Assembly: GCA_002269645.1 (NCBI GenBank)
Contig: NIVC01000109.1
Span: 62,001 to 126,000 of the forward strand
Direction of reading: 5' to 3'
Source: Macrostomum lignano
Taxonomy: Eukaryota
DNA: 64,000 bases
The translations under genes were made by a program, and so were the position numbers. Of the stretch, positions 6,689-57,939 are shown one piece after another. Each line of letters begins with the position of its first letter. Positions within the stretch are counted from its first letter, which is position 1. The notes below the pieces were generated by a model, which was not told the origin of the DNA, made no database searches, and saw nothing but the letters and a program-made list of their open reading frames with translations.

Positions 6689-6689
6689 A

Positions 6690-21725: not shown

Positions 21726-24700
21726 TCAAGCGAACACCATATTCCCATCGTCGTCCATGTGACCAACGATGTGCAGGTACAGAGTCTCCAGGCTGCCCGA
21801 CGGGTCAGTGCCCGACCCGATCACCGTGGCATATTCGGTGTTGTTCAGTAGGTTCTACAAATGGCAGAGCGAATGGGTGCAGAGAGCAACTCGGTATCGT
21901 GCAACAGTGTAAAATATAACCGGAAAAAATACTTGGATTTTTGCTACGGAAAATTACTTGTATTAGGAAAATGCCTTGCGAGAGCCAGAGACTGATGAGG
22001 CTAACCCATAGACATAACCAATCCTGCCCTATATCGCGTGGTTTGACCATAGACTTATCCAATCCCGCATGCGGGGGCGTAGCCCAGTGGTCCAGTGTGG
22101 CGCTCTGATGTGCCAGCGGCCCAGGCTCGATTCCTAGTGCAGTCGCATTAATTTGGGGCTAAATTGAAATCTCGGCTTGGCTCTGCTCGTGCAATTAACA
22201 TCCTTGAGGGCCAACCCCCAAAGCACAGTGAAGTGTACATAGTGTAAATAAAGTTAGGGCCGCTCATTCACTCCTGTGTAGTGTGCCTGCGTATGACTGC
22301 GTACGTATCCGCGCGCTTGTGTGCCTTTGCTCAGGGGAGTCGGCTGAATGGGTAGTAATGCCTCTCGCCGGTTGTGTGACAATGTCGCTTAAAGTGCGCC
22401 AGGGTAGTTTAGATGTTGCCACAACTGGTGACTACATGCCTAAGTTGGAACTTCTGTCTAACGCTTTAGCTCGTACACAACAAATTTCTCTGAATCCAAC
22501 CTTGTACAGGTAGTGCGACCGCATGAAGTCCTGCTCCAGTTCCAGCGACGTGTGGCGATATGAGTCATTGACCTGCTTGCCCGACGGCTCTCCCAGGGTG
22601 ACCCCGCGACGGCGACGCAGCAGAACTGGCACGGCCACTAGAAGCAGCAACAGCAGAAGCAGCACCGGCAGCAGAAATAGCAGATTTTTGTTTCCATTGC
22701 CTCGGATGATTGGCAGTTTAGCTAGAATTTAAAATAGCCCAGACCGTGACATTTTATTGCAAAGCATAGTTAATTATCTGTTATAAGTATTTAAGAAATT
22801 ATTTTTTGAGTTTATCGCTAAATCTATCGAAAAAGATTCACAAGCTACTACTTCTACGATGCATTTGCTTCTTTCGATCAATACTTTGCTTTTTTATTAT
22901 TGGCGTGCAAACTTTAATTAGGCTTTAATTAAGCTCGAAAGCTTTAGATCCAAGACAAAAAGAATTGGATGCTCAAATTCATAGTTATTAATAGATTTCA
23001 CAGCATTCGAAGCAATACTCACTCGGGGCATCATCTGTCGAGTTGAGAATCCAATAATGGGTCTTGGAGAAATTCACTTTTCCATGTTGTGAAATCACAC
23101 AGGAAATGTTGATTTCATCGTTGTGAGCCTCGAGCAGGTGAGTCAAGCTGTGAGAGGCCTGGCCTGTCTGAAGAGCCAAGGCGGTGTCAGAGGAATTCTA
23201 CAATGAGATACCATAAGATATTTATACTTGTGATAATTACGAGACGATATGACATTTTTTGCGGCTGACTGACCAGCTGAGCTCCGTTCGCAAAGCACTG
23301 AGCCTCGGGACTCGGATTGCCATCGGAGATGTTCAGCATTGCAGAAAAACTGGTTCCGTTAAAGCTTGGGTCGGACAGATTTACGTAGGGCTCGTCTGAG
23401 GGTGCAGAATGCATTGGTGCATTTTACGAGCGTAAGTGCATTGGTTCTGAGGCTTCCTACAAATTTTCTGCTCATCGAATACCTGCAGGATGTCAGGAGA
23501 GACACTGAACACAAAGAATCCTCTTTTCTTTCTGTATATCCTGAACCTACTACGAGTATATACAGACTGTGGTGCTGACGTAAAAGTGAATTGAGCTAGT
23601 CTGAAGCTAGTTCGAACTCGTGACTAAGAAAATGCAGCATTTATGTTTTAGAGATCAGACTTTCTTATCGACTCTAAATAAAACTAATGAACTAACGATG
23701 CTGTTATAGTTTCAACTTGAAGTTATAAAACTAAAAAGAAAATTAGTACAGCAAACCTGCTTACAGAAAACGGTGATGTTTTGCCGAAAATTGCTGCTCA
23801 GATCTTCGAGGCCCGTCTGAGAGACGCTGCACGCCACCGAGCCGCCGTCCATCCACCTCGTGGAGTTAGCGCTGAATTTCGTGCTCTGACCCGACTGAGT
23901 CCCATCAATGCTGCTCATGCTTATATTCACACCCTGAGCTGTCCGCAGCCAGCACCGGTGACTGGGCTCAGGGTTGCCACCGAATGACCGAACTGAGACT
24001 GACACGGGCTCGCCCTCCTTCATCACCAAAGGCTGGGTTGCATTCCATGAGCTGATTGGTGCATCTGTAGATCGTTAGATAGAGAAAAATATTTTACTGG
24101 AGAGTTCACATTGGAAACAACTACAAGTTACACTCGTGAAGTTTGAAAGCAATCCATGAAGCATTTAATTCGCTGTAGAGAACTCACACAGTACACTGAT
24201 GGAGTCACTGGTGACTGACTGCTTGAATATGATGGAGCCGTTTGAAGCCGCTTGCTCAACTTTACAGCTGATATTATTTCCATTGTCACTTGTCAGTACA
24301 TCGATTGTCCACACGGATGACGCATTTGACTCCACAGGTCTCTGCAAGGTACTCGTACAAGCCATTGTGTCAAATTTCGAGATACAAACAATTCTTCGCA
24401 AGCGCTTCTGTGACCTCACCTGGATTTGTGTTAAACCTCGCTGAGCAACTCTGCAGGAGTGCCGACCGGGCGGGTTTCCTTGACCGGATGCCAGCAGGGT
24501 CACTCGAACTGCAGATCCGTTGCGAATCCGCCTTGACGACAGATGGACCGACAAGTTGCGGTTTCGGTCTGAAAGCGAGAGGAAAAATTGGCACCTGTAT
24601 GCAATCAATTTTCTATACAAAAGACACAAGAGATGAAGCACATGCTTACAAAAAACGGTGATGTTTTGCAGAAAATTGCTGCTCAGATCTTCGAGGCCGG

Positions 24701-27700
24701 TCTGAGAGACGCTGCACGCCACTGAGCCGCCGTCCATCCGCCTTGTGGAGTTCGCGCTGAAGTTGGTGCTCTTCGCTATGCTGCCTGTCTGATCCGATTG
24801 AGTTCCATCAGTGCTGCTCATGCTTATATTCCCACCCTGAGCTGTCCGCAGCCAGCACCGGTGACTGGGCTCAGGGTTGCCACCGACTGACCGAACTGAG
24901 ACTGACACGGGCTCGCCCTCCTTCATCACCAGAGGCTGAGTTGCAGTCCACGAGTTGTTCGGTGGATCTATGCATGACAGAAAATGTTGTTACATATTAT
25001 ATTACATGTAAATATTTTATATCCCGGATGCTTCTGTGGATACTAAACTAAGTTTACGAGTACAGTGATTGATTTTTCGCTCCACTCAAACGAACCGAAC
25101 TTGGTTTTTGTCTTTTCAAAACTATATTTTGCGGTGAATTTTTCCTGATTTAGTAGGGAAAAATCTTTTAATTTAGAGTTAGAAATCAATGTTTCTTGGA
25201 AACTATCAACAGACAGTCGCTTAATGGGTAATTTCGGTGATCAGAAAACTCACACAGCACACTGACTGACCCGCTGCTCACTGACAGGTTAAACACGGCT
25301 GGACCGTCTGCAGCAGCTTGCACGGCTTGGCAGGCGACTCTCAGCCCATTGTCACTGGCCTGTGCTCTGAATGCCCACACAGATGATGCATTCGAGTCCG
25401 ATGCTTCCTGAAAACACGCATTCAAATTTATGAAGCAGGAGCTAAATATCATAGGCTGGCTTTTGTTAACTGATTCGAATTTTATTACCTTTTCTTTGCT
25501 CAGACTTCTTCCATCCAGCTGACAGAAATGCTGAGCAGGCGGATTTCCCCGATCAGAGGCCAGCAGCTCAACTTTAACATTTGAGCCACTTCGAATACCG
25601 CCTGAAGGGATTCTGATGGATGCGCTGCTGATGGGATCTGAGAGTTTAACATAAAGATGAATTATTTCAGGAACAATTACCTACGATTTTCTTAACAAAG
25701 TCTATATGCACATGCATGTTACAGACAGACTGTACACCAAGATTTATGCGAGTGAAAAGGGGGATAGAAGTACCTTGTGTACTATATTCAATTTGACAAT
25801 CGTCAAGCCAAGAGCATGATATAATTTCATTTCCCCCTTTTTCAGATGAGTATGCTTTGATACAGTAATTATTACTAATAGACGAATGGCTTTAGGAATC
25901 CGGTATGAGCAAAAATTTATCTGTATTGAAGCGAATGTCGATTTCATATTGAAATTCATTCGGCATTACTTGCTCTGCTAAACCAATCAATGCATCATTT
26001 CCTATCAGAAATATGTCTAGCTGAAGTACCATAAGCTGTGTACACATCTAAGCTATGTACACATGAAATCCAGCCTGATTTCATTTTTAAATTGTGGCTC
26101 ACAATAAACGGTCACATTTTGCTGAAAATATCCAGCCAGATCAGTGAAATTCTGCTGAGACACCCGGCACAGCAAAGCGGCTCCGTCCATCCGCCTCGTG
26201 GAGTTCGCGCTGAAGTTGGTGCTCATCGCTATGCTGCCTGTCTGATCCGACTGAGTTCCATCAGTGCTGCTCATGTTTAAATTCCCACCTTGAGCTGTCC
26301 GCAGCCAGCACCAGTGACTGGGCTCAGGGTTGCCACCGACTGACCGAACTGAGACTGACACGGGCTCGCCCTCCTTCATCACCAGAGGCTGAGTTGCAGT
26401 CCATGAGTTCCTTGACGCATCTGTTGAACAAATCAATTCATTTCGATTGCGTTCCATCCACTCAGAATCATAACAATGGGAAACAAAAACGACCCGAACT
26501 CACAGAGCACATTGAGTTTGTCACTGACTACTGACTTGTTGAACAAAACTGTGCTGCTTTCAGTCATCTGCAAGAGATCACACTGGATTTGCTGTCCGTT
26601 GTCTCCGGCCAGAGCTTTCAGTATCCATAGCGATGAAGCATTTGATTCAGATGGAGGCTGGAATCAGTTTAGGGAACGAGGTTATTGTCATGTATCACCT
26701 GTCAGTCAAATACTACAAACTACAGCCTTACCATAATCTGTGTGAGATTCCTTCCAGAAGCAGAGCAGCTGTGCAGAGACGGAGGATTTCCGCGGTTAGA
26801 GGCAAGCAGCAGAATTTGAGCTGAGGAATTCGCTCGGATCTGCGGTGCGGCCAGTCTGATGGAGGCGCTCCGCACTGGGTCTGCGGTGTTTTCATATGAA
26901 ATTGGCTACTGTGTAGAAATTGTGTCGCAAACAATAATATCAACTATCCACCAAGTGACTCACACAGAGCAGCTGGCAGCGGATGCCGGGCCCACGTCTC
27001 GATCAGTCCCGACTGATTCACCAGACACGCAACGGATGCGCTGCTGCCCCACCGTCTGCTCACAGTTACTGAGAATGTGCTGCTTGAGTTTGTGCTCTGA
27101 AGTGAGTTCAGCTCATGCTGTTTTCTGCGGGTTTTGCAACTCAGCTGCAAAACTGTAAAATACTCACCGAGACAATCCGCAGTGTCGAGTTCGGTACTCC
27201 CTCTGACTGCAGAAAGCAGCTATGGCTGGTCGCCAGCCAGTTTCCTTGAGATGAGTCAGCTGTCAGATTGACAGTCGCCCCGTCTATCCAGTTGGAGTCT
27301 GGCGGAAGCAAAAACCGAGTGATGCAGGGCTCTGGAAAGGTTCGAGACGTTGGTGAGATGAGAATTGTTGCTGTTTGAGCAGTGAGAGCTGACTCACCTT
27401 TTATCTCAGGTATCTGAGCTGAGACTGTTGTTATGGTCTGACTGTTGCACTCGAGGCTGCAAAATAATGTTCCGTTCTGATAGCTCAGCGATACCGGAAC
27501 GCTGAAGTACGAGATGAGGTCAAAGCTCATATTTCTGTTTTTTGTGATGAGTTTCTAAAAATTCAAAATGCCACAGAAGACTTCCATTCAGATACTGAAT
27601 GATTGTTTTAAAAGTATTTTTAAAAATTGCGAACATGAAATTTTTATTCTCACTTCAGATATTGCCTTCAGTTCTTTACTCGAATCAGTTGCATTCGATA

Positions 27701-30329
27701 CAGACAATGCCACCGAACACTTGTGCACAGGCATTGGAAACGAGCCTTGAGTGATGAATGTGAAAACTGCAGTACTGTTGACCACCCAGTGCTTAGTGAA
27801 GCCAAGGTTCAGCTGAATGGAGGTTGGGATTTCTGAAATGTTTAGAGCTGGTGCACATACTCTGGAGCCAAACAGCTCGCTACTTCCCCAAAAATTCCCC
27901 AGAACACAAACAGCTCGCTACTTCCCCAAAATAATTCCCCAGAACACAAGTAGCTCGCTACTTCCCCAAAAATTCCCCAGAACACAAACAGCTCGCTACT
28001 TCCCCAAAAAATTCCCCAGAACACAAACAGCTCGCTACTTCCCCAAAAAATTCCCCCAGAACACAAACAGCTCGCTACTTTCCCCAAAATAATTCCCCAG
28101 AACACAAACAGCTCGCTACTTCCCCAAAAATTCCCCAGAACACAAACAGCTCGCTACTTCCCCAAAATAATTCCCCAGAACACAAGTAGCTCGCTACTTC
28201 CCCAAAAATTCCCCAGAACACAAACAGCTCGCTACTTCCCCAAAAAATTCCCCAGAACACAAACAGCTCGCTACTTCCCCAAAAAATTTCACAGAACACA
28301 AACAGCTCGCTACTTCCCCAAAAAATTCCCCAGAACACAAACAGCTCGCTACTTCCCCAAAAAATTCCCCAGAACACAAACAGCTCGCTACTTTCCCCAA
28401 AATAATTCCCCAGAACACAAACAGCTCGCTACTTCCCCAAAAATTCCCCAGAACACAAACAGCTCGCTACTTCCCCAAAATAATTCCCCAGAACACAAGT
28501 AGCTCGCTACTTCCCCAAAAATTCCCCAGAACACAAACAGCTCGCTACTTCCCCAAAAATTCCCCAGAACACAAACAGCTCGCTACTTCCCCAAAAAATT
28601 CCCCAGAACACAAACAGCTCGCTACTTCCCCAAAAAATTCCCCCAGAACACAAACAGCTCGCTACTTCCCCAAAAAATTCCCCAAAACACAAACAGCTCG
28701 CTACTTCCCCAAAAAATTCCCCAGAACTTAAACAGCTCGCTACTTCCCCAAAATAATTCCCCAGAACACAAACAGCTCGCTACTTTCCCCAAAATAATTC
28801 CCCAGAACACAAACAGCACGCTACTTCCCCAAAAATTCCCCAGAACACAAACAGCTCACTACTTCCCCAAAAAATTCCCCAGAACTTAAACAGCTCGCTA
28901 CTTCCCCAAAAAAATTCCCCCAGAACACAAACAACTCGCTACTTCCCCAAAAAATTCCCCAGAACACAAACAGCTCGCTACTTCCTCTAAAAATTCCCCA
29001 GAACACAAACAGCTCGCTACTTTTCCCAAAAATTCCCCAGAACACAAACAGCTCGCTACTTCCCCAAAAAATTCCCCAGAACTTAAACAGCTCGCTACTT
29101 CCCCAAAATAATTCCCCAGAACACAAACAGCTCGCTACTTTTCCCAAAAATTCCCCAGAACACAAACAGCTCGCTACTTCCCCAACAAATCCCCAGAATA
29201 GAGTCAACGCCCCACATTCAGAACTCACTGATTGACTTCCAACCGCGGAGTCCCAACGTCTGTGAAGTCACCGCCAGAACTCCATCAGTGCAGCTGTGCC
29301 GGCACTGCAGTGACGCACCATGCAGTTCCCAAGTCATGGTAATGTCGTTCAGAATCAGGAAACTTGGTCTATAAGTCTTCTGTACGATTGAAGGGAAACT
29401 TTAATGTAAAACTGTTTTACATTTTTACACTGCAATTTGATTTCGATTCAGTCCTTACGATGCTCAGGGCCGTGACGTCACCGCTACGGGTTCTGATGCT
29501 GCAGTTCACCGAGTCAGGCTTCTCTGAGTGGCACGGCAGCGACTCTTTAACCATCACCTTGTCATTTTGCGTCAGGTCTGACAACTGTTCAACAGAGCAT
29601 CTTTGTTTGCCTTCTGGCTTGCAAAAGTATTCTCTAAAGCAGCCAGACTCCTGTGCTTCATCTTGTTCATCTTCCTCAAGTTCCACCATCACGAAGTTCA
29701 TGTACTTGTCGGCTGCATTGGCAACGAATTTCCTCAGCAACACGAACCTCGGCAGCTGCAATGGGATTCAAAAGTGAGCGCAGCGAGTTCGAATATCGAA
29801 TGGATCCAGTAAGCGGGTGCCAAACCTTGGAATAATCCCGAGTTGCGCAGGTTATTTTGTATGAAAAGTTCGAGTTGCCAAAGTTTCCAGTGACTCCGCA
29901 CAGGTGAAATTCGATCAGACTGTGGTTGAAACTCGCGATGCAGTCAAGTGGACTCTCAGTCAGACCTGCCGGCATCTGGTGGCCGAGCAGAACCTCGATG
30001 CCCTGGGCCCTGACTTTTTCTGAAACTTTAGCTATATAATCAGGTATGATGTAAAATGGCTGTTCATTTGAATATTTAGTTTAAACAGCTACTTGAAATT
30101 GACAACTCACCGACATTCCTTCGGTGGACAATCACAGAGCGCACTGAAACACATCGAGCAAGTTTCACAAGCAGCCACTGGTAGCCAGAAGCATCTGGAG
30201 TGTTGCTGGAGTGAAAATAGTCCCATTGCCATGGTCTGGCTGATGAGTCACGGAAGCAGCCTTGTCTGTTGTATGCGGAAGATTGCCAGGCGTCAGAAAT
30301 CTCCTTGGCTGTTATGTTGACGCCAACGC
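21726..30329 (-). CDS. Receptor paralog C: F-type-lectin-like domain + ~10 Ig domains + TM + tail with two ITSM-like motifs; signal-peptide exon not found
   Basis: Lectin exons at 30329-30111, 30019-29826 and 29755-29459, then 29379-29229. Ig exons run from ~27835 to ~23030 (repeated GGNPEPSHRC and DRGNPP motifs). TM exon at 22700-22501 (LLFLLPVLLLLLLLVAVPVLLRRRR). Terminal exon at 21854-21726 (NLLNNTEYATVIG...ETLYLHIVGHMDDDGNMVFA*). Confidence 0.78.
22072..22160 (+). mobile_element. tRNA-related head of a second SINE family or a tRNA pseudogene
   Basis: GGGGGCGTAGCCCAGTGG A box and GGCTCGATTCCT B-box-like motif; no convincing cloverleaf. Confidence 0.45.
27865..29190. repeat. ~39-bp intronic minisatellite (CCCAGAACACAAACAGCTCGCTACTTCCCCAAAAAATTC)
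   Basis: About 34 units; the same array occupies the equivalent intron of paralogs E and G. Confidence 0.97.
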
Positions 30330-30920
30330 CTGCAGCATTGTTCGGTGAGGTGTGATGACCTTGGATTTCTTGATGGCGAAGTCGTTCTTCCCTATCGCTG
30401 CATAATGGCCCCGAGAGTCTCTTCGATGTCGCACGCGAAGGCGTATTCAGCATGCCAGTGAAGTATGAGACAGACTAGGCCTACGAGCTAAGGTCTGCGA
30501 TGCTTCACGCCTGCCCCTATCTTCAGCAGGTCAAGGCTGGTGGGAGGTCTGCACCCTCTATTTGCCTCTGGCAGCCGCAGACTCCCCCACGCTGTCTCGC
30601 AAGTGGACCCAGGGGTACTCGTCCCCGCGTGTGTTCAAGGCAGACCCTAGGGCTGCTGGACAGACTGGGCTCTGGCGCTGGCGACCCTATCCAGTGGCTT
30701 CGGCCGAATTTGGGTATGCGGGTCTGGCCCGCCAGCCTGCAGGCCGTGGTGCTGCTTAACGTACCCTCTAATGCCTAAGGTGTTTGACCGTGCCGATGGG
30801 CTGGAAGGCCGGGGAGTAGTCCGGTCGCTAGCGGTCCTTTTTTCAAACCGGCTGGCTTGAGGTGTCGGCCAGTCGGGAACTCAACTCGCGTAACGAGTAG
30901 CCCTCCCCCGCTTTTCAGCT

Positions 30921-32306
30921 ATGGCCACTAACGCCAATTTTATCAATGAAACTGACCCGGTCGCCACTGGCCCACCGGGATCAGCCGCTCTGGTAGCTAC
31001 CACTGGTAGCACCAACGCCCAACCTGGTCCAACCGGGCCAGCTGACGCTGCCGCCGAGCACCCTGGCCGCCAGTCTAGCCGACCGCGCACGGCCGAGTCC
31101 CGACGGCAGCGAAATATCCGCCGTAATCGTAAGCGGCAGGAGAAGCGGGCTGCTGCTGCGTCCGCGGAGGGCGGGCAAGCCGCGGTGAGGCCTTCGGGAG
31201 CCACCGCAGCGGGGAGGCCCTCTGGGGAGTCCGGTGGCGCGGCTGGGCCGTCAGGAACCGCCGTGTCCTCGGACTCTCAGGGGGGGGGGGGCAACCCTGC
31301 CGGCCTACCGCCTTCCAAGGACAAAGCGGCCCCGCTCAAGACCTCCGAGTCCTACGCCTCCAAGGTCAAGCAGCCGCTGCAACCCGCCGTGATGATCCTC
31401 GGCGGGGATTTTGACCTGACGCCCGAGCAGCTCGACGTCGCGTGGCGCACCATCGACGAGGGCTTGCTCAACCTAACCCTGGAGGGCGTCTTCGTGGACA
31501 TCGTCAATTCCACCAAGGCGAACGGGTGCATCCTACTGTGGTGCAAATCCGAGGAGAGCACCCAGCTCCTGCGGGATCAGCTGCCCAAGTTCGACTGGCA
31601 CAGTGACCTGGGCCAGCTGACCTTCGCCCTGGAGAGCGAGCGGCCGAAGACCATCCGCCATCGGATTTGGGTCCCGGCCGACAGTGCGATCAAGTCCGGG
31701 GAGCAGCTGCGGCAGCTCCTGCTCAAGCGGCACCCGGATCTCGACGCCAGTGGTCTTGTGTACCACAGCACGGTCCGCAAGGGCACGACCGGGGCCACCG
31801 TCATCCTCGGCCTGACGGAGGGATGGGCCAAGCGGCTACCGCACGGCACAAACCTCCACCTTGGTCTCCATCAACTGACCATCCTCCGCTGTGAGGAGGG
31901 AAAGGTGGAGACCAAGAACGACGGGAAGCGCGCCGCTCCCGGAGCTGGGGCTCAGGCTCCGCCGGCCAAGCGGCAGCAGCAACCCGATCCCGAGCCTAAC
32001 AAGGCTATTCGCGCTGCTGAGTCCGCCTCGCGCGGACGTAGACCCGCCCGCAGTAACCGGCGGTCCGGGCTAATCCAGCGCGCACTTGACGAAGCTCAGT
32101 CTCTGAGACTTCACCTCGAGCAGACTCGTGCTGCTCGCAAAAACACCGAAAGCCAGCCGAGGGAACTGGACGACGGCATGGCTCAGCCTTCCAACTGGTG
32201 GGATTACCACCAGGAGGACGCTGCCGGCCGAGCTCAGACTCCCGACGGCGGGGCGCAAGGCGAAGGCAGCAGCCGTACCCCAGTCGCTGGGGGGAGGGCG
32301 GTGTAG
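30921..32306 (+). CDS. LINE ORF1 (nucleic-acid-binding, gag-like)
   Basis: 461-aa ORF immediately upstream of the APE-RT ORF, with basic/low-complexity termini and a SYASKVK motif. Confidence 0.8.
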   Translation: MATNANFINETDPVATGPPGSAALVATTGSTNAQPGPTGPADAAAEHPGRQSSRPRTAESRRQRNIRRNRKRQEKRAAAASAEGGQAAVRPSGATAAGRPSGESGGAAGPSGTAVSSDSQGGGGNPAGLPPSKDKAAPLKTSESYASKVKQPLQPAVMILGGDFDLTPEQLDVAWRTIDEGLLNLTLEGVFVDIVNSTKANGCILLWCKSEESTQLLRDQLPKFDWHSDLGQLTFALESERPKTIRHRIWVPADSAIKSGEQLRQLLLKRHPDLDASGLVYHSTVRKGTTGATVILGLTEGWAKRLPHGTNLHLGLHQLTILRCEEGKVETKNDGKRAAPGAGAQAPPAKRQQQPDPEPNKAIRAAESASRGRRPARSNRRSGLIQRALDEAQSLRLHLEQTRAARKNTESQPRELDDGMAQPSNWWDYHQEDAAGRAQTPDGGAQGEGSSRTPVAGGRAV

Positions 32307-32457
32307 CGCGTCTAGGTGACTCACCTGCTGTGGGCGCCGTGTCCGCCTCCGCGGCGGCTGGGGAGGCGGCTGGGCCTGAGCCAATGGAAACTGGCGACTC
32401 AACTCTCACCGATGAGGCTGAGAATGAGTTGCTTTTCTCCTCCCCTGGACAGTAGAC

Positions 32458-37070: not shown

Positions 37071-37074
37071 CACT

Positions 37075-38395: not shown

Positions 38396-39060
38396 GGTCT
38401 GTAGATGTCGGTAGGCCGGCTAGGAATCGTAGGCAGCCTGAGAGGCTAATCATTAATCCTAGGGCCAAGACGTATGTTAGTCGCACTGCCCGCATCTGCG
38501 TGCACCGATCAATCCAACGCAGCGATTAACTCTGACTCTGTGGACTTGGTGCTGACAGGCACCCTCTGATTTTTCCCTGCTCTACTTTATGTGGCGCCTC
38601 AATAGCGGGCCAGCGCCCCCGCAATGCGTACTCGTTTATCTTCCCGTGAGCTGTTGCTCTGATGCAGTTCTGCATCCCCCTTCTCCCCAGTGACGGGCTC
38701 TGCCGGCTGTCTATGGTATCCCGTATATTTAGGCACCCATTTTCCGGGCCGGCGCCCCCAAACCGCTGTTGGACTGAGGTCCTGATTCTGCGTACGCCCG
38801 AGGGACTTGCCAGCCCCTCCGATTTTATGATTTTCTAGGGCTCTGCCTTGGCGTGGGCAACCCACCGGTGCTATTGGTGCTTCGCCATTTTGGGTCACAA
38901 TCCTGACCTTGGCCCAGCCGTGTAATAATTTGCATGCCTTGTGACACTGCCATCCTTTTGCCAGGCATTTGTAATCATTTTATTTAGTAAAATCACTATT
39001 TTGTTTATTAAATAAAGCGCGCTTCGCTTTCACTCCGCCTCTTCATTTGAACGGGGAGAG

Positions 39061-41428: not shown

Positions 41429-41995
<567 letters not shown>

Positions 41996-42383
41996 AGCTG
42001 AGTCAAATCAAAGTAACCGAGTATTAACTCATATCTCATAGCAAATTCAACATAATTGAACATCGTTGCAAAAAGCAATTGGCCGAGTTTTACACATCCT
42101 TTTCAAGTTTAGCCTGTGAAATGTGAAGGCGTACAGTGCCGCGTACGCTCTCACATGTTCCGGGACAGGTAAACTTCAATCAAGCACGGTAATCATTAAT
42201 AAAATAATTAATAGCACGTACAACTATGTCTACCAAAATAAAGATTTACGTCGCAGCAACGTAAAGTGTATTGCCGTATTGTCAAAGAATTCATAAGTCC
42301 CATTTTTGAAGAAAGTTATTTAAGACTGAAGCGATTACAGCGTAGCAACAAATCAGAAACTGTGTACACAACGAGAAATCAGA

Positions 42384-48300: not shown

Positions 48301-51300
48301 ATGCAGGTGAGAATGTATTTATGCCCGCGATTATACTTTGCAAACGGAATCATTTCCACCAGATCCATCTCCCACTGATCATCAATGGCCCTCACTATTA
48401 TTGGCGCCCTTGGAAATCGTACTCTAGCTGGCTTATGCAGAGTGTGTACTGGCTGCTGACTTAGCCACTTCTCAATGCTCTTGACTCCAATATGCTCGCC
48501 TCTTTTTCGCAGTTCATGTTGCAGTTTTGAAGAACTGCAATAGCTCGCAGGCTGATTTGGATTGAAATAAATTTTTTCCATTTTCAGAAACAAAGAAACA
48601 TTTTTTTTTAGGTTTTCTTAAGACATTGAAAATGTACGAGTATAGCGCATGTGAAAGCAAGCATATATTTTTTATTTTCAAACAAAGAGATGGAAAGCAG
48701 GTCTGGATAAAAAGCTCGTAGCACAGAGTTTGTCTCAATGTCAGAGGGTCTGCAATCAGTCGAAGCACGGCCTGGGCAGCTTCATGGCGTCCAATCTGCG
48801 CAGAGCGAACGGCGGCTGCTTGCGTTTCCTGGCGTTCTCAGCGGCTGCTTGAGCTCGGAACTGGTACCAGACTGGGTCCTCTTGCAGATCAGTGTCCTGC
48901 CGAGGAATCGCTCCAGCTGCTGGCTTGGTCAGTTGCAGAGGCGTTGAAGTGGCAAACGCTGTGTCGATTTGCAGATTGGATGGCATGCCAGCCACATCGC
49001 CAGCAGCAGCAGGAGCATCGTCCTCCGCCTTCACTACCGGCTTGGTCTCTTCCGCGTTTTCGCCAGCACCGTCTTCATTTTCGATGCTGTTGGAGGAAGA
49101 TCCCGACTCCAGCTCGTATACATCGGAAATCTCACGTGGAGCCGATAGCTGCTCGTCGATCCAATCCGCGTACTGCCACAGCTTTCGCCACAGCGGCGGT
49201 GTCAGCGGCACGGTGTTCCGCTTAAGAAACTCGTCGCAGCAGTCCTCCGGCAATCGCTTTAACCAGATAATGCCGTTTTTCACTTCGATGAACTTATCGA
49301 AGCCGAGTTTGACAACCTTTGGCTGTTTGTCCAAGGCCGCCTTGACAAGCGATCGCTTCAACTCCTTGAGCTTCTCCCACTGACGGATGTTCAAATTGAA
49401 GCCGGGACTCCAGGTTTCAAACTCGCAGTGCTGCCATGTCGGTAAAATTTTCTGATAGCAATGAACATAACTCCTTCATACTCCTGTATTTGGAGTTTAT
49501 ATCCTTCGCCGATGTCCATGACTTAAAATCTAACAGAATAAACTATCTCGTCGAAAAAAAATCGTTTTTTCATGAATCAAAGAGATTTTTTGGTCCTTAT
49601 ATAGACTAAACCACTGCAGCAGACATACAGCAATAGAAAAACATAGGCCTATGTTCTCTCACTAAGGCCCCATGGAATTTCCATGGCTTTCCCTGCGGCA
49701 GAGTCCACCAATGCATTTACATAGGCGCTATGTTTACACACATAGGCCCGTGGTTTTCCCACGGAAATTCCTGCGGCAGAGTCCACATTTCCCCTACTAC
49801 TATGGAGGAAGAGTCGGAGACATGGTAGGGCGAGTCGATTATATGGAAGGGCGAGTCAGGGGTATGGAGGAAGAGTCGGGGACATGGTAGGGCGAGTCGA
49901 TTATATGAAAGGGCGAGTCAGGGGTATGGAGGAAGAGTCGGGGACATGGTAGGGCGAGTCGGGGACATGGAAGGGCGAATCGATTATATGAAAGGGCGAG
50001 TCGATTATAAGGAAGGGCGAGTCGATTATAAGGAAGGGCGAGTCGGGGATATGGAAGGGCGAGTCGATTATATGGAAGGGCGAGTCGATTATAAGGAAGG
50101 GCGAGTCGATTATAAGGAAGGGCGAGTCGATTATAAGGAAGGGCGAGTCGATTATAAGGAAGGGCGAGTCGATTATAAGGAAGGGCGAGTCAGGGATATG
50201 GAGGAAGAGTCGGGGACATGGTAGGGCGAGTCGGGGACATGGTAGGGCGAGTCGATTATATGGAAGGGCGAGTCAGGGGTATGGAGGAAGAGTCGGGGAC
50301 ATGGTAGGGCGAGTCGGGGACATGGTAGGGCGAGTCGATTATATGAAAGGGCGAGTCAGGGGTATGGAGGAAGAGTCGGGGACATGGTAGGGCCAGTCGG
50401 GGACATGGAAGGGCGAATCGATTATATGAAAGGGCGAGTCGATTATAAGGAAGGGCGAGTCGATTATAAGGAAGGGCGAGTCGGGGATATGGAAGGGCGA
50501 GTTGGGGATATGGAAAGGAGAGTCGGGGACATGGTAGGGCGAGACTGACATCGAAGAGACTCTCGGGGCCATTATGCAGCGATAGGGAAGAACGACTTCG
50601 CCATCAAGAAATCCAAGGTCATCACACCTCACCGAACAATGCTGCAGGCGTTGGCGTCAACATAACAGCCAAGGAGATTTCTGACGCCTGGCAATCTTCC
50701 GCATACAACAGACAAGGCTGCTTCCGTGACTCATCAGCCAGACCATGGCAATGGGACTATTTTCACTCCAGCAACACTCCAGATGCTTCTGGCTACCAGT
50801 GGCTGCTTGTGAATCTTGCTCGATGTGTTTCAGTGCGCTCTGTGATTGTCCACCGAAGGAATGTCGGTGAGTTGTCAATTTCAAGTAGCTGTTTAAACTA
50901 AATATTCAAATGAACAGCCATTTTACATCATACCTGATTATATAGCTAAAGTTTCAGAAAAAGTCAGGGCCCAGGGCATCGAGGTTCTGCTCGGCCACCA
51001 GATGCCGGCAGGTCTGACTGAGAGTCCACTTGACTGCATCGCGAGTTTCAACCACAGTCTGATCGAATTTCACCTGTGCGGAGTCACTGGAAACTTTGGC
51101 AACTCGAACTTTTCATACAAAGTAACCTGCGCAACTCGGGATTATTCAAAGGTTTGGCACCCGCTTACTGGATCCATTCGATATTCGAACTCGCTGTGCT
51201 CACTTTTGAATCCCATTGCAGCTGCCGAGGTTCGTGTTGCTGAGGAAATTCGTTGCCAATGCAGCCGACAAGTACATGAACTTCGTGATGGTGGAACTTG

Positions 51301-54300
51301 AGGAAGATGAACAAGATGAAGCACAGGAGTCTGGCTGCTTTAGAGAATACTTTTGCAAGCCAGAAGGCAGACAAAGATGCTCTGTTGAACAGTTGTCAGA
51401 CCTGACGCAAAATGACAAGGTGATGGTTAAAGAGTCGCTGCCGTGCCACTCAGACAAGCCTGACTCAGTGAACTGCAGCATCAGAACCCGTAGCGGTGAC
51501 GTCACGGCCCTGAGCATCGTAAGGACTGAATCGAAATCAAATTGCAGTGTAAAAATGTAAAACAGTTTTACATTAAAGTTTCCCTTCAATCGTACAGAAG
51601 ACTTATAGACCAAGTTTCCTGATTCTGAACGACATTACCATGACTTGGGATATGCACGGTGCGTCACTGCAGTGCCGGCACAGCTGCACTGATGAAGTTC
51701 TGGCGGTGACTTCACAGACGTTGGGACTCCGCGGTTGGAAGTCAATCAGTGAGTTCTGAATGTGGGGCGTTGACTCTATTCTGGGGATTTGTTGGGGAAG
51801 TAGCGAGCTGTTTGTGTTCTGGGGAATTTTTTGGGGAAGTAGCGAGCTGTTTAAGTTCTGGGGAATCTTTTGGGGAAGTAGCGAGTTGTTTGTGTTCTGG
51901 GGAATTTTTTTGGGGAAGTAGCGAGCTGTTTAAGTTCTGGGGAATTTTTTGGGGAAGTAGTGAGCTGTTTGTGTTCTGGGGAATTTTTGGGGAAGTAGCG
52001 TGCTGTTTGTGTTCTGGGGAATTTTTGGGGAAGTAGCGAGCTGTTTGTGTTCTGGGGGAATTTTTTTGGGGAAGTAGCGAGCTGTTTGTGTTCTGGGGAA
52101 TTATTTTGGGGAAGTAGCGAGCTGTTTGTGTTCTGGGCAATTATTTTGGGGAAGTAGTGAGCTGTTTGTGTTCTGGGGAATTTGGGGAAGTATCAAGTTC
52201 ATTGGCCCCAGTGTTGCGCATAAACTCTGAAAATTTCAGAAATTCCATCGTCCATTCAGCTGAACCTTGGCTTCACTAAGTACTGGGTGGTCAACAGTAC
52301 TGCAGTTTTCACATTCATCACTCAAGGCTCGTTTCCAATGCCTGTGCACAAGTGTTCGGTGGCATTGTCTGTATCGAATTCATTTAATTCAGCTGAAGAA
52401 CTAAAGGCAAAATCTGAAGTGAGAGTAAAACTTTCATGTTCGCAATTTTTAAAGACTTTCAAAAAAATCTTTCATTACCCGTATCGATAAATTCTTTGGC
52501 ATTTTGAATTTTAGAAACTCATCACAAGGAGCAGCAATGCTAGCTTTGACCTCGTCTCGTACTTCAGCGTTCCAGTATCGCTGAGCTATCAGAACGGAAC
52601 CGTATATTGCAGCATCGAGTGCAATAGTCAGACCATAACAACCGTGTCAGCTGAGATACCTGAGATAAAGAGTGAGTCAGCTCTCACTACTGATTGACAC
52701 AGCAGCAATGCTCATCCCACCAACGTCCTGAACCCTTCTAGAGCCCTGCATCACTCGGTTTCTGCTTCCGCCAGACTCCAGCTGGACAGACGGGGCGACT
52801 GTCAATCTGACAGCTGACTCATATCAAGGGAACTGGGTGACGACCAGTCATAGCTGCTTTCTGCAGTCAGAGGGAGTCCCGAACTCGACACTGCGGATTG
52901 TCTCGGTGAGTTTACAGTTTTGCCGCCGAGACCTGCAGAAAGAATGGTGTGAAATGAACTCATTCCAGAGCACAAACTCGATCAGCACATTCTCTGTAAC
53001 TGTGAGCAGACGGTGGGGCAGCAGCGCATCCGTTGCGTGTCTGGTGAATCAGTCGGGACTGATCGAGACCTGGGCCCGGCATCCGCTGCCAGCTGCTCTG
53101 TGTGAGTCACTTGGTGGACATTTGCTTGCGGCAGTAAAATATGACCCGAATTAATCACGAAAATAAAAAAGACGAAATCAAGAACTACTAAAGTAGATAC
53201 AAACTAACTTCTAGTGGTCCTTGAACTTGAACGGAACCTGCTCTTTCACTTCGGTTGACAAACATTTGACTGACTTTTCGTATGCACTCGCCATAAAATA
53301 AGCCTCTTTCCTTTCTTTTTTGATGACCGGTTTTTTATGTACATGCATTGTGATATTTCGGAAGTCAAAGTTAGAGGTGCATGACGCAATGAGATTTAGT
53401 GCTAATTACTACGGTGGTATGCTGCAGTAGACAGCAAAGAGTTGCTACAAGTATGAGTAAGAGGCCATGGAGCTGACCTGCTAATTACTCATGAAGTTCC
53501 TAAGAGTGCAGTCTTCTATCTCTGCAAGGCACCAATGCATAGCCATTCTCGACACAACAAACGATAGCAATATGCATTCTTACTGTAAATGAAACTTAAA
53601 TTACCGCAGACCCCGTGCGGAGCGCCTCCATCAGGCTGGCCGCACCGCAGATCCGAGCGAATTCCTCAGCTCAAATTCTGCTGCTGGCCTCTGACCGCGG
53701 AAATCCTCCGGCTCGGCACAGCTGCTCTGCTTCCGGAAGGAATCTCACACAGATAATGGTAAGGCTGTAGTTTTCAATATTTGACTGACAGGTGATACAT
53801 GACAATAACCTCGTTCCCTAAACTGATTTCAGCCTCCATCTGCATCAAATGCTTCATCTCTATGGACACTGAACGCTCTGGCCAGAGACAACGGACAGCA
53901 AATCCAATGTGAACTCTTGCAGATGACTGAAAGCAGCAGAGTTTTGTTTCGCAAGTCAGCAGTCAGTGACAAACTCAATGTGCTCTGTGAGTTCGGGTCC
54001 TTTTTGCTTCACATTGTCATGATCCTGAGTGAATGGAACGCAATTCAAATGAATTGATTTTGTTCAACAGATGCGCCAATCAGCTCGTGGACTGCAACTC
54101 AGTCTCTGGTGATGAAGGAGGGCGAGCCCGTGTCAGTCTCAGTTCGGTCAGTCGGTGGCAACCCTGAGCCCAGTCACCGGTGCTGGCTGCGGACAGCTCA
54201 GGGTGGGAATATAAGCATGAGCAGCACTGATGGAACTCATTCGGATCAGACAGGCAGCATAGCGAAGAGCACGAGCTTCATCGCGAACTCCACAAGGCGG

Positions 54301-57300
54301 ATGGACGGCGGCTCAGTGGCGTGCAGCGTCTCTCAGACCGGCCTCGAAGATCTGAGCAGCAATTTTCGGCAAAACATCACCGTTTTCTGTAAGCATAAAG
54401 TTGACTTTTTTACACAATGATTATCAAAAATTTATTTGAAGAATGCCGAATTCTAGTGCTAATTGCAAGTAGTAAAAATGTACGCGTAAAAACTACGAGT
54501 ACATTGGCAATGAGTTTCTTCAGGCGGAAGTTGAGTGGGATAAATGACTCAAAAACAGGGCAATGAAATTGGAGTGAAAAATATTTAAAAACCTTGCAGA
54601 CCCAGTGCGGAGCGCCTCCATCAGGCTGGCCGCACCGCAGATCCGAGCGAATTCTCCAGCTCAAATTCTGCTGCTCGCCTCTGACCGCGGAAATCCTCCG
54701 GCTCTGCACAGCTGCTCTGCTTCTGGAAGGATTCTCAATCTTTTAAAGGTAGGGAAAACCATTTTAACAGTGCTGTACGTTTCTTATTTTCGCTCTCAGC
54801 ATCCAAAACGGGTTTCAGCCTTCGACATGTCTGAATGCGTCATCACTCTGGACGTGGAACTTCCCTACCGATGACTCTGGACAGAAAGTCTACTGCGAAA
54901 TCGTTCAAACTGCCAAAGATGGTTCGACTTTATTCAATCAGACTTTTAGCAGCGGCCGAGTCGAACTTTTTCGTAAGTTTTTTGATTCTGACAAAATACG
55001 AACCTACTTGTATGTTAAATCTATGGTTTATGTAAGTATTGTTTCTAAACCTGCGATATCTATGAGTATCATACATAGTATATGCCTTTCGCAAATTTTT
55101 CTTTTGTAATTTGAGAGGAGGTTATACCCTAGTGGTTAGAGCGTCGGACTTACGACTGAAAGGTCGGGGGTTCGATTCTCTACCGACTAGGAACAATTTG
55201 TGTCCTTGTGCAAACTCTGCATTGCTTCAGTTCACCCAGATGGGGTAACTGAGGGTGTGTGGTGACCCCCCCCCCCAGTCCTTGGACTGGACAGCCGTAC
55301 GCAGCCTTCAGATGCGCCGCGCAATGGCTGCGGCTGAGCTGTCGGTTGCACATCTGGCCAATTGGGGCAGGTGTAATCAATTATTATTGTCAGTATTTAG
55401 CTACTTAAGTAATTGACATAAAAAACCGATTACTGATAAAATGATTGACCCTCTTTTTTATCAGCATTAAAACAAAGAAAACGTCTACAGAAATTTTAGC
55501 CGCAAACCTTCATTCCAATTTTCAGTCTTGGCCAACAACTCACTGACGTTCAGTCCCAGCGCGTTCATTACTGAAGGCGACAATTTAACCATCACAGCCG
55601 TGTCAGTTGGTGGCAGACCACCCGTGAGAAATGTCACCTGCTGGGCTGGAGGGACCCTGCTTCAGGTTTGCTTTTACCCAGCTGTTATTAAAGTATGTTT
55701 TGGTTTATTGTAACCTCATTATTCACGAAAACTTATCCATTGGCAGGAAACTGCACCATCTAATGCGTCTCTAGCACCAGACCGGTTTGAAAAGCAATTC
55801 ATGCTGAATGCGATAACACGCAAGTACAATAGAAGGACTCTAAGCTGTGCATTTGAGCAGGATGACAAGTTGGCGCAGTGGATAAACACGACTCTTGATG
55901 TGTTCTGTAAGTTGCACATTTATCTTAAGTTTTAAGCCTACATTATCATAAGCTGTTAAAATAATTTTGAACCCTCGCAGATGCGATCCGAAACGCATCG
56001 ATCAGTTTATCCTCAGCTCGAGTTCTGAGCGAATCTGCTGTGAGTTTCACCCTGCAGACATCGGATTCGGAAAATCCACCAGCTCGACACTTTTGTCACC
56101 TGGCTGAGAGGACGCTTCAACAAGCGGTACGTAGAAATTGCACCAGAATGATCGGAGCAGATAATCGTAAAAGTAATGCAATAAATCAAAACTTTTAGAT
56201 CCCAGCTTCCAACAACAACTCATCGACTTGGAGATTCACGCCTGCTGCCAGTGACAATGGAATGCGGATCAAATGTCAAATTGTCCAAATTGCTCAAAGC
56301 GGTTTCACTGTTTTTCATTTACTAGTGAGCAGTGAGATGCTCAATGTGCTGTGTGAGTTTGTAAAGGCTCTTTCCGAATTTTTATTGAGTTTAACTATTA
56401 AACGGGACATGTCTATAGTACTTTAGGGCTGTACACAGTATAAAGTCAAATGGGGTTGTAGCCTAGCGGTTGGAGCGTCGGACTCACGTTTGATAGGTCA
56501 GGGCTACGATTCCCGTTCCACTCGGAGCAATTTGTGTCCTGAGCAAGACACTTAACTCTACATTGCTTCAGTTCTCCCAGCTGTAAAATGGGTGCCAGCA
56601 TTAGCTAGGGTAATTGAGGGTGTGTGTGGCGGACCCCCCCCCCAGTCCTTGGACTGAACAGCCGTACGCAGCCTTCAGATGCGCCGCGCAATAGCTGCGG
56701 CTGAGCTGTCGGTTGCACATCTGCCAATTAAGGCTGCTCATTTCTTTCAGATGAAGCAAAAACTCAATGGACTGCTACTCGGCTGCAACTACTGAGAGAG
56801 GGCGAGCACCTCTCAGTCTCCGTGAAGTCCCTGGGTGGCAACCCGGAGCCCAGCCACCGGTGCTGGCGGCAGACAGGCGATGGTCCCGTAGTGAGCTTGC
56901 ACAATCGTGTAAAGCAAGTCAAAGAGGCGAACCAGCTCGAGACCAGCTTCGGCACGAAGGTTGAAAAGTGGATGAACGGCGGCCATGTAGTCTGCAGAGT
57001 CAAGCAAGATGGACTGCGAGACCGAGTCTTCCGGAAGAATATTTCCGTGATCTGTGAGCGGTCTTAACTTGAATATAAGTTGATCTACAAGTATCTAATG
57101 CCATTAGACTTCTAAGCACTACCGACTCAAACGTCTGATCCTCCCGCAGTCCCATCGAACTGGATCAGCTGGTCAGGCCAGTTGGTGAACGGGTCCGACC
57201 TCAACCTGACAGTGGAAACGGGCGAAGGTAATCCAAAACCGGTTCTGAAGTGCACCCTGAACTCCGGCAGATCAGACGGCGAGAGACTTACGGTTTGAAC

Positions 57301-57939
57301 TCTGAATTTTTATTGATAGCTCGTACTCTGCATGGCCCACAGATTCTAATGCTCTTCACTTTTATTCATTCTGACTGACAGGTAATTCCTGAGCCCTATC
57401 ACACAGGCAGCAACCGGGGCTGGATTCGGAGAGTGCGACTCATTCATCGGTTTTCCGAGCGGCAAACTGAGGTTGAGGTCACTTGCAAGCTCAGCCAGCC
57501 TTACTCAGATGTTCTCAACCCATTCCCAGCTCTAACGATAAAAAGAACATTTCAGGGTGCTTTCGGTAAGTGTCTGAGTCGGTTTGATATCGATCCCATC
57601 CCAAATCCCAAAAACACAATTTCTCCTTTCAACAAAAGCTGCAGTATATAGATGGTCATTAACTGTCACGCCGGCTCCGACAGTTGCTGTACTCTGCTGC
57701 TTACTGGCCGTAGTTGCCGTGGCAACTGTCGCTGCTGTGCTCAAGAGGAATCGAGCTGCCGCTAGCGGTCGAAGAGATGGTGTCGAGCTGCAGGCCACTG
57801 GGAAACCGAACGACCCTAGCGTGAGTTGAGCAGCTTCATTGTTAACTTCAATACTTCATTCACGGAATTTCGCTAATGTTAAAGGTACATCCAGCAAATG
57901 TTTTTCTTACAGACTGTGTACTACGAAGCGGACAACTGA
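42384..57939 (+). CDS. Receptor paralog E: signal peptide + F-type-lectin-like domain + ~10 Ig domains + TM + short Tyr tail (multi-exon, apparently intact)
   Basis: Exon 1 at 42384-42444 (MDFSVNLAIFFICTLCCVGY). Intron 1 contains the Maverick. Lectin exons at 50648-50866, 50958-51151 and 51222-51518. Ig exons run from ~51600 to ~57565. TM exon at 57645-57820 (VAVLCCLLAVVAVATVAAVLKR). Terminal exon at 57913-57939 (TVYYEADN*). Phases were consistent throughout the manual walk. Confidence 0.82.
42540..43060. repeat. ~21-bp intronic minisatellite (ATATGGAAGGGCGAGTCGGGG), left of the Maverick
   Basis: Direct tandem units; continues at 49802. Confidence 0.96.
43061..43194 (+). repeat. Maverick left TIR
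   Basis: Near-perfect reverse complement of 49668-49801. Confidence 0.95.
44721..45258 (+). mobile_element. 5'-truncated LINE (RNase H C-terminus plus zinc-binding tail)
   Basis: WLQWIPSHIGIQGNEEADQEAK...LRCGH...CSFC...H...C, a (CA)n tail, and a 10-11-bp TSD (A)CAGCAGCAGC. Confidence 0.85.
45320..45690 (+). repeat. 90-bp coding tandem repeat x4
   Basis: AEVSLSDLIRDMDSGPAPPPPPPPTEVQPA repeated. Confidence 0.95.
46600..47060. repeat. 7/8-bp satellite (CCGATTC[A])n inside the Maverick
   Basis: Direct observation; abuts and truncates the capsid-like ORF. Confidence 0.96.
47040..47501 (-). pseudogene. N-terminal fragment of a Maverick minor capsid (penton, PX)-like protein
   Basis: IICSENAEGTPSDFHFHLPSPIYLDRNVDYEAGLAEIHLPAAWFNV resembles the Maverick minor capsid N-terminus as recalled (F...LP..i.L....evaL.ei..p..w.n). 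It lies directly downstream of the integrase and runs into the satellite. Confidence 0.6.
47514..48593 (-). CDS. int: Maverick c-integrase (DDE) with C-terminal chromodomain
   Basis: WEMDLVEM, RTDQGKEF and IIERWNRTLK motifs; chromodomain VIEKVL...YLVKWAGY...WVDEKDL; uninterrupted. Confidence 0.95.
   Translation of the reverse strand: MFLKMEKIYFNPNQPASYCSSSKLQHELRKRGEHIGVKSIEKWLSQQPVHTLHKPARVRFPRAPIIVRAIDDQWEMDLVEMIPFAKYNRGHKYILTCIDVLSKFAMARALKSKSAAEVKSAFESMLKSSKRQPRTVRTDQGKEFVNAIFRQFCIDRGILAFPTSSEHKAAIIERWNRTLKSKMWRYFTHNSTLQWLDVLPKLVKSYNNTFHRSIKTTPMNVSKANETEVWMNLYDGKAIETVEKLRKPKFCENQSVRISNAPRLFRKGYKANWSEEVYTIVFRAPKHYPYMYRIRDMKGEDIRGLFHEHELQAVPDSQRLYVIEKVLKTEKRKGKIRYLVKWAGYKSTDWVDEKDLRKV
48756..49519 (-). 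pseudogene. Tandem PC4/Sub1-like ssDNA-binding-domain protein with a 1-nt frameshift
   Basis: From ATG 49519: MDIGEGYKLQIQEYEGVMFIAIRKFY...LKPG, shifting into FNLNIRQWEKLKEL. A second unit, VPLTPPLWRKLWQYADWIDEQL, resembles the PC4 consensus ISL...QW..L....ID. Confidence 0.6.
49668..49801 (-). repeat. Maverick right TIR
   Basis: Ends CTACTACT, followed by TSD ATGGAG. Confidence 0.95.
49802..50540. repeat. ~21-bp intronic minisatellite, right of the Maverick
   Basis: Same unit as 42540-43060. Confidence 0.96.
51785..52190. repeat. ~39-bp intronic minisatellite (~10 units)
   Basis: Reverse complement of the 27865-29190 unit, in the equivalent intron of E. Confidence 0.96.
55113..55388 (+). 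mobile_element. tRNA-derived CORE-like SINE
   Basis: Same family as 17365-17645 (A/B boxes, GTGTCCTTG core, GCTGCGGCTGAGCTGTCGGTTGCACA 3' part). Confidence 0.85.
56452..56730 (+). mobile_element. tRNA-derived CORE-like SINE
   Basis: Same family; core reads TTTGTGTCCTGAGCAAGACACTTAACTCTACATTGCTTCAGTTCTCCCAGCTGTAAAATGGG. Confidence 0.85.

Follow-up and report, generated by a model that had tools for sequence, protein, structure and literature searches.

Introduction

How do two neighbouring genes come to share almost the same head, introns included, on bodies and tails that differ? The question is raised by a stretch of 64,000 nucleotides from the flatworm Macrostomum lignano (assembly GCA_002269645.1, contig NIVC01000109.1, positions 62,001 to 126,000 of the forward strand), which is called the window below and is numbered from its first letter. 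In it, two predicted receptor genes, C and E, lie head-to-head on opposite strands with their start codons 1.6 kb apart; a third relative, G, a shorter one, B, and a fragment, A, are also present (Table 1). C and E join one type of lectin-like head to two unrelated membrane-proximal modules, each made up of immunoglobulin (Ig)-like domains, a transmembrane segment and a tail. The data support gene conversion, i.e., non-reciprocal exchange, as the process that shaped the two heads: the shared tract has sharp edges, takes in introns and synonymous sites, and is accompanied by discordant trees.

Gene Models

Gene models were obtained by splice-site enumeration guided by paralogues. In the models of B, C, E and G, every junction is GT-AG, the frames are uninterrupted and the introns at domain boundaries are in phase 1. 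Parts of the models agree exactly with database proteins, namely P0001 (body of C), P0027 (head of C), P0009 (head of E) and P0008 (G); P0001 (A0A1I8IYP7) matches the minus strand of the window from 27530 to 22504 with 100% identity. Since C is reproduced in parts by P0027 and P0001, the reference annotation cuts it into two gene models. The predicted products have the layout of type I membrane proteins: a signal peptide, a head of ~165 amino acids encoded by three exons, an array of Ig-like units, a transmembrane segment and a tail that contains tyrosine. The array has units of two exons (A, B, C, Y, W and Z) and X units, which are single exons of 318 nt. According to the models, there are 11 Ig-like domains in E, 10 in C and three in B.

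Conversion of the Head Block

A sequence-only reading of the same DNA had described C and E as nearly identical across the exons of the lectin domain and the first Ig (Ig1) and across adjacent introns. This is borne out by an alignment of E 50540-51790 with C 30437-29190 (~1.25 kb, introns included), in which 15 of the 1248 sites differ (98.8% identity). Identity is 99.5% in lectin exon a, 99.0% in each of b and c, and 97.4% in the second exon of the first Ig, the differences in the four head exons numbering 1, 2, 3 and 4; the three short introns are 100, 98.6 and 100% identical, with 0, 1 and 0 differences (1 in 240 nt). At the amino acid level, identity is 98% in the lectin domain and the first part of Ig1, 94% in the remainder of Ig1 and 85-93% from IgB to Y1. 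Past a 39-bp minisatellite in the intron after the first Ig, nucleotide identity is 88-97% in exons and 82-95% in introns, about 87-90% overall. Synonymous divergence (dS) rises from 0.016 in the head to 0.127 in the downstream block, an 8-fold difference, and the ratio of nonsynonymous to synonymous divergence (dN/dS) in the head is 0.67, with seven of the 10 coding differences there altering an amino acid.

Could this step in identity have arisen by purifying selection alone, the head being under stronger constraint than the rest of two old duplicates? It is common for binding domains to be conserved, and motifs such as PLVMKEGEPVSVSVRSVGGNPEPSHRCW are invariant even among distant paralogues of the family. 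However, the head introns, at 98.6-100%, stand against 82-85% for the introns downstream, a dN/dS of 0.67 is not low, and head and flank give discordant trees, as described below. Selection does not explain the identity step because introns are conserved like exons and because dS differs so much between the two blocks. Conservation by selection only is contradicted by intron identity and dS, and of the explanations considered here it is the least credible.

Gene conversion, in turn, should leave a breakpoint and a discordance between trees, and the sequence-only reading had named a recombination test and per-exon phylogenies as checks on its mosaic model. Tests of this kind gave positive results. 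The maximum chi² statistic is 92.8, the maximum among permutations being 22.1 (p≤0.0005); the breakpoint is E 52206, the end of the 39-bp minisatellite, and the rates of difference between C and E on its two sides are 0.9% and 9.3%. The longest run of identity between C and E is 307 nt, against a 99.9th percentile of 185 under the null. The head tree is ((C,E),G), with 54 informative sites joining E and C, eight joining E and G, and seven joining C and G, whereas in the flank after the minisatellite (~340 nt) the three genes are equidistant (86-88%), the corresponding numbers being 19, 24 and 17; the heterogeneity of informative sites between head and flank has a chi² p of 6.6e-7. Because head copies related as ((C,E),G) sit on equidistant flanks, the head has been homogenised at least twice, on bodies that had diverged earlier. 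This differs from what the sequence-only reading had envisaged: the head evidence speaks for near-identical heads kept alike on already diverged bodies, and gives no sign of different heads being moved between bodies.

The edges of the tract coincide with tandem repeats. In E and G it lies between a 21-bp and a 39-bp minisatellite; in C it has the 39-bp array only, with transposon sequence upstream. The 39-bp array of G has seven copies. These minisatellites may start or limit conversion. P0026, encoded elsewhere in the genome, has a fourth head of the C/E/G type, in which E-type residues and G-type residues form a patchwork. Two further proteins encoded outside the window, P0019 and P0023, are close, non-identical versions of segments of E. 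As P0019, P0023 and P0026 are near-copies, the genome holds more copies of this sub-cluster, whether homeologues, alleles or paralogues.

The genome of M. lignano is partly duplicated (partly polyploid) and difficult to assemble. It might be supposed, then, that one locus has been assembled twice, from collapsed or duplicated haplotypes or through a chimeric palindromic read, and the near-copies of E segments in P0019 and P0023 would fit such an artefact. Yet the two head copies lie 20 kb apart, inverted, in unique and differing flanks; they differ at 15 sites, and their minisatellites have 34 and 10 copies. Identity drops to ~88% and then to none within one contig, which is not expected of a duplicated haplotype; the C and E copies each have their own diverged exon 1; and the heads of C, E and G each match a separate database protein exactly. 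A palindromic read is rejected because the copies are separated by 20 kb, differ at 15 sites and have minisatellites of unequal size, and an assembly artefact of any of these kinds is very unlikely.

Older Colinearity and Diverged Bodies

Beyond the head, C and E had been described as similar through about the fifth Ig domain and as completely divergent thereafter. The first part holds: colinearity extends from E 50547 / C 30430 to ~E 54311 / C 26180, taking in the first ~240 nt of X1, the fifth Ig exon, inside which it breaks after '...RRMDG'. The second part holds for gene order, as colinearity is lost there, but not for sequence, since exon-sized patches that are 91-96% identical remain at non-corresponding positions. 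Identity is 96% between C_X2 and E_X1 (dS 0.055), whose flanking introns do not align; C_X3 and E_X1 are 93% identical, also at non-corresponding positions; and a stretch of ~125 nt recurs almost unchanged in four X exons, each copy having one or two substitutions. The 3′ third of C_X1 shows a dS of 0.7-0.9 to the other X exons. Among Y exons, E_Y2a is 91% identical to Y1a (C_Y1a), whereas E_Y2b is only 50% identical to Y1b. These patches would be best explained by short, exon-sized conversions that keep Ig exons of the X and Y types alike, both inside one gene and across genes.

At their 3′ ends the two genes are as the sequence-only reading portrayed them, C with a Leu-rich transmembrane segment and a longer tail (the last exon being predicted), and E with a different last Ig, a different transmembrane segment and a tail that ends in TVYYEADN. 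The last Ig domains of C and E share 18% identity, and their transmembrane segments and tails have no meaningful alignment (nominally 33%, with a negative score). The transmembrane segment of E, VAVLCCLLAVVAVATVAAVL, contains no charged residue, and its tail is 34 amino acids long. The tail of C contains two TxYxx(V/I) motifs, TEYATV and TLYLHI, in an exon predicted via a weak GTTGGA donor; the alternative, read-through, would give the end ...HYLYKVGFREICC...GM and a stop codon. P0011, a relative with transcript support, has VVYAQV and TEYTEI in its tail, which is a single exon and gives no support to the split tail of C; no clustered partner was seen at its locus. A homology search with the tail only returned P0001 alone.

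Exon 1 of E matches that of G (61486-61546) and the signal peptides of these two are near-identical, while that of C (MNFHLKLMLCITCTFFCIGE) has diverged, its exon 1 showing 71.6% identity to exon 1 of G (81 nt, inverted). The simplest reading is that C is a chimera of an E/G-like 5′ part and a foreign 3′ part, E having probably kept the ancestral architecture.

Gene B and the Origin of Its Tail

If tails had been exchanged among genes, B would be the first place to look. It lies outside 21726-57939, the interval of the sequence-only reading, which had nevertheless drawn on it as a sign of shuffling. Its features are as described there: a diverged head, three Ig domains, the GGWIRRARVFHRFSEQQAEVVVTC motif in the last of them, and a tail ending in AVYYYAEG and a stop codon (12271-12245). 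The transmembrane segment of B, like that of E, has no charged residue. The amino acid identity between B and E is 44% in the head, 40% in IgA-b, 63% in IgC, 46% in the last Ig, and 42% in the transmembrane segment and tail, and on this uniformity over the whole gene (40-63%) a recent exchange of tails between them is rejected. Moreover, the tail type of E and B, ...DP(S/N)-(T/A)VYY(Y/E)..., also occurs in P0021 and P0010, which bear other heads. Because B-E identity is roughly uniform along the gene, the shared tail is most simply read as ancestral and not swapped. Thus, the proposal that recombination or conversion acted at this locus stands as regards conversion and chimerism, for which the identity step and the discordant trees speak, and falls as regards B.

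A putative signal-peptide exon of B (16839-16870; MVDSSYCIKNS) has neither a hydrophobic core nor a donor site; B may be 5′-defective, with a signal-peptide exon that looks degenerate. Fragment A has a better signal exon (MKSHIKELLYLLRIGCLLC, 5168-5212) and is truncated after its second lectin exon by retrotransposon sequence (2-4105). An intron of B contains a minisatellite with a 34-bp unit (14659-15157; Tandem Repeats Finder), copies of which fall in open frames every ~102 bp. It consists of copies of a segment in which the acceptor site is followed by the opening codons of the next exon (…CCAG-AGCCCTGCACCACTCA…), and since it repeats the acceptor, there are in-frame cryptic acceptors at 14778, 14880 and 14982.

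The Lectin-Like Head and the Receptor Family

What is the head that has been kept alike? The sequence-only reading called it a lectin, and a profile of seven diverse heads does match solved F-type lectins (striped bass FBP32, 3cqo, both lectin domains, E=7e-6; eel agglutinin AAA, 1k12, E=0.057). The heads also give weak Pfam matches to F5_F8_type_C and F5_F8_type_C_2, in the superfamily to which F-type lectins belong. The aligned blocks are AWQSS/ATQSS, a His, W-W/L, V-S-V-x-V-x-x-R, R-x-x-G-x-E-(V/I) and F-x-C-G. F-type lectins bind fucose through one His and two Arg residues, and their domains are found combined with other domains and with transmembrane segments (PMC5712786). In the heads, His40, Arg71 and Arg77 align with this basic triad; C and E do not differ at these positions, and in one paralogue Leu replaces the His. 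The flatworm heads resemble F-type lectins such as AAA and FBP32 in profile and in the aligned blocks, whereas they lack the canonical motif spacing, its acidic residue and the calcium motif h2DGx. Structure modelling, in which the B-like P0004 was used in place of the spliced models, gave AlphaFold models of low confidence (predicted local distance difference test scores of 35 and 56), for which Foldseek found no match at E≤0.001; they are too poor to serve as a test of the fold. 'Lectin' is thus supported as a family-level label for the head on the basis of profile comparison, and sugar binding is putative. Furrowed of Drosophila is an example of a membrane-bound F-type lectin. A literature search turned up no account of an F-type head on a long array of Ig domains, nothing on F-type lectins in flatworms and nothing on this receptor family.

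In each Ig unit an SHRCW...VAC pattern and a GNPxP motif recur. The C2-set_2 cut-off of Pfam was reached in P0013 (21.0 bits), matches to Ig_3 were weak, and scans of single exons gave sub-threshold matches only. UniProt names the proteins 'Ig-like domain-containing', and the Cys...Trp...Cys pattern together with the profile match supports the reading of the units as Ig-like domains. A rough translation of the plus-strand gene matched six proteins only, all from Macrostomum lignano, and a full HMMER scan of 1.84 billion representative proteins yielded 21 relatives only, each of those with a species name being from M. lignano. The family is therefore small and lineage-restricted; judged by these searches, it is a family of lectin–Ig receptors restricted to Macrostomum lignano.

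A Proposed History of the Locus

How could such a pair have arisen? The comparisons make it probable that an inverted partial duplication and the formation of a chimeric C were followed by conversion of the heads between the inverted copies. Initially, an E/G-like gene would have been duplicated in inverted orientation over its 5′ part alone, starting at exon 1 and stopping halfway through the exon of the fifth Ig. The duplicated part would then have been joined to 3′ exons of a different lineage of the family to give the chimeric C. One or more later conversions between the inverted copies would have homogenised the ~1.25-kb tract of lectin and first Ig, an earlier conversion event having taken in G too, and Ig exons of the X and Y types would have undergone exon-sized conversions of their own. 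Given the inverted orientation of the copies, crossing-over within the shared block would flip the intervening 20 kb and swap promoters and heads between the two bodies.

Several points weigh against this history or parts of it. A dN/dS of 0.5-0.8 is found, and one partner could be decaying. The models of C and E and the structure of the locus are read from the sequence of a single assembly. The flank comparison with G covers only ~340 nt, as G leaves the window. The last exon of C hangs on its weak donor, and the source of the 3′ half of C can be followed only weakly, as far as a resemblance of its tail to P0017/P0024 (E=0.033, the database comprising 25 sequences). Both first introns, ~10.4 kb in C and ~8.2 kb in E, are swollen by transposons. 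As for the head, the canonical F-type motif HX24RXDX4(R/K) is not matched, the spacing being ~H-x30-R and the acidic residue being replaced by N, Q or A, and the calcium motif h2DGx is absent, with no DG at the aligned position (CFRDSS or CFIRSI).

Comparison with Paired Receptors of Vertebrates

Among vertebrate paired immune receptors (Siglecs, KIR, CEACAM), gene conversion characteristically keeps lectin heads matched while the tails differ. SIGLEC11 and SIGLEC16 lie head-to-head ~9 kb apart, and their N-terminal lectin/Ig region of ~3 kb has been converted repeatedly under relaxed constraint (PMC5701461); SIGLEC5/14, among primate paired receptors, is a comparable case (PMC4042635). C and E resemble SIGLEC11/16 (and SIGLEC5/14) in being linked genes, placed head-to-head, in which the lectin and adjacent Ig, with their introns, are converted, the converted exons fit relaxed constraint and the transmembrane and tail modules differ. 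They are unlike them in that the head is F-type-lectin-like and not a V-set Ig, that the proteins are much longer (10-11 Ig-like domains) and differ in the membrane-proximal half of the ectodomain as well, and that there is no charged transmembrane residue and no known adaptor with an immunoreceptor tyrosine-based activation motif, the host being a flatworm. SIGLEC11/16 would thus be the closest analogue, though a partial one: the likeness is structural, and the contrast in signalling is putative.

With KIR, LILR and CEACAM, the family shares symmetric phase-1 Ig exons, exon-sized conversion patches, chimeric genes and rapid gain and loss of copies, as well as tail classes, activating and inhibitory in those families, recombined with similar ectodomains. 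It differs in being lineage-restricted and independent, with no detectable sequence relationship to them and with Ig domains barely at Pfam thresholds. The C/E locus shows a known evolutionary pattern, in a variant form, in an uncharacterised flatworm receptor family.

Do C and E work as a pair? By analogy, C could be a receptor of the inhibitory type and E an activating or otherwise different one, both binding the same glycan ligand, and selection would favour conversion, which may keep ligand specificity matched between two differently signalling receptors. Such a functional pair is possible, if unlikely. The geometry and the converted N-terminal lectin/Ig region come close to SIGLEC11/16; the predicted tail of C has two TxYxx(V/I) motifs, comparable motifs occur in the transcript-supported P0011, and the tail of E is short and of the VYY type, unlike that of C; and the His/Arg/Arg positions of the lectin site are alike in both. 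However, of the features of vertebrate paired receptors, C and E show gene linkage and similar ectodomains, but E does not show a short tail combined with a charged transmembrane residue, which B lacks as well. The C motifs lie in the exon reached by the weak donor, where the single-exon tail of P0011 is of no help, relaxed constraint fits the head dN/dS and the seven nonsynonymous changes among 10 equally well, and the outer half of the two ectodomains differs in domain number and sequence. It is somewhat less likely again that this flatworm has independently evolved a paired-receptor system, in which conversion would match the F-type-lectin–Ig heads and motifs like the immunoreceptor tyrosine-based inhibitory and switch motifs would occur in one partner only.

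Other Elements in the Window

The window is rich in transposons and minisatellites (Table 1). The long interspersed nuclear element (LINE) in the first intron of C contains two inverted arrays of 16-, 49- and 65-bp repeats (33968-34628 and 35104-35733; 78-89% mutual identity), which sit between the endonuclease and reverse-transcriptase parts and could fold as a large hairpin. In the first intron of E, the 6.7-kb transposon contains the coding sequence of an integrase whose domains are rve and chromo (47517-48617, minus strand); its 90-bp tandem repeat (45321-45685) codes for a proline-rich peptide. A Ty3/gypsy-type long terminal repeat retrotransposon occupies 5968-11404, with an open gag-pol frame of 1349 codons (6676-10722) that contains zinc knuckle, reverse transcriptase, RNase H and integrase domains; it is flanked by perfect 174-bp repeats (6516-6689 and 10951-11124), to which arrays of 23-28-bp minisatellites are adjacent, and its insertion is probably recent. 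A dispersed repeat of ~270 bp (70-79% identity) is found near B (17371-17646) and in two introns of E (55120-55388 and 56454-56730) and looks like a short interspersed nuclear element or a miniature inverted-repeat transposable element. Just 3′ of the stop codon of C lie two long satellites, at 17853-19788 and 20682-21716, consisting of (GTCTAATCTT)n in ~194 copies and of a 14-bp unit in ~74 copies. ARAGORN found no tRNA genes in the window.

Table 1. Positions of the receptor genes, their parts and associated repeats in the window.
Feature	Position	Strand	Remarks
Gene C	40771→21726	-	22 exons
Gene E	42384→57939	+	23 exons
Gene G	from 61486, leaves window at 64000	+	P0008 identical to model
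Gene B	12245..16445	-	divergent head, three Ig domains, E-type last Ig, transmembrane segment, tail AVYYYAEG
Fragment A	4269-4773	-	truncated family member
C exon 1	40711..40771	-	signal peptide MNFHLKLMLCITCTFFCIGE; phase 1 end, GTGAGT donor
E exon 1	42384..42444	+	signal peptide MDFSVNLAIFFICTLCCVGY; phase 1 end, GTGAGT donor
C head block	29199..30430	-	lectin exons a, b, c, first Ig and introns; 98.8% to E, 95.0% to G
E head block	50547..51778	+	partner of C block; 10 exon differences and 1 intron difference
G head block	62170..63402	+	third copy; 95.0% identity to C and to E
39-bp minisatellite, C	27869..29198	-	34 copies; intron after first Ig; 3′ edge of converted tract
39-bp minisatellite, E	51779..52192	+	10 copies; maximum chi² breakpoint near its end
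21-bp minisatellite, E intron 1	49811..50543	+	5′ edge of head block; other half 42528-43059
21-bp minisatellite, G	61612-62166	+	5′ of G head block
C older colinear block	26180..27868	-	IgB, IgC, Y1, first ~240 nt of X1; 87-95% to E block
E older colinear block	52193..54311	+	colinearity with C stops within exon X1 (54071-54388)
C-specific body	21726..26179	-	3′ end of X1, Y2, X2 (24967-24650), Y3, X3 (24064-23765), last Ig, transmembrane, last exon
C last Ig	23395-23274 and 23197-23023	-	C-specific body
C Leu-rich transmembrane exon	22721-22501	-	C-specific body
C predicted last exon	21854-21726	-	TEYATV and TLYLHI; weak donor GTTGGA
E-specific body	54312..57939	+	Y2, W, Y3, X2 (56751-57053), last Ig, transmembrane, tail
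E Y2 first half-exon	54600-54748	+	91% copy of Y1a
E last Ig with GWIRRVRLIHRFSERQTEVEVTC	57150-57292 and 57382-57565	+	E-specific body
E transmembrane exon	57645-57820	+	E-specific body
E tail exon	57913-57939	+	...DPS-TVYYEADN and stop codon
LINE (endonuclease and reverse transcriptase) and integrase fragments	30894..38392	+	occupy most of C first intron
6.7-kb transposon	43061..49801		134-nt terminal inverted repeats, 99% complementary; within 21-bp minisatellite, E intron 1

Significance

Even if C and E do not work as a pair, their locus is a clean case of minisatellite-bounded conversion between inverted paralogues, in a family whose genes the current annotation fragments, C being one example. 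If the pair were functional, the logic by which vertebrates balance their innate receptors would have evolved convergently in Platyhelminthes, and the paired architecture would seem to arise readily wherever tandem lectin–Ig receptors evolve. RNA interference and transgenesis are established in Macrostomum lignano, and in this animal C, E and their relatives would then be candidate recognition receptors, acting in immunity, in the distinction of self from non-self, or in mating.

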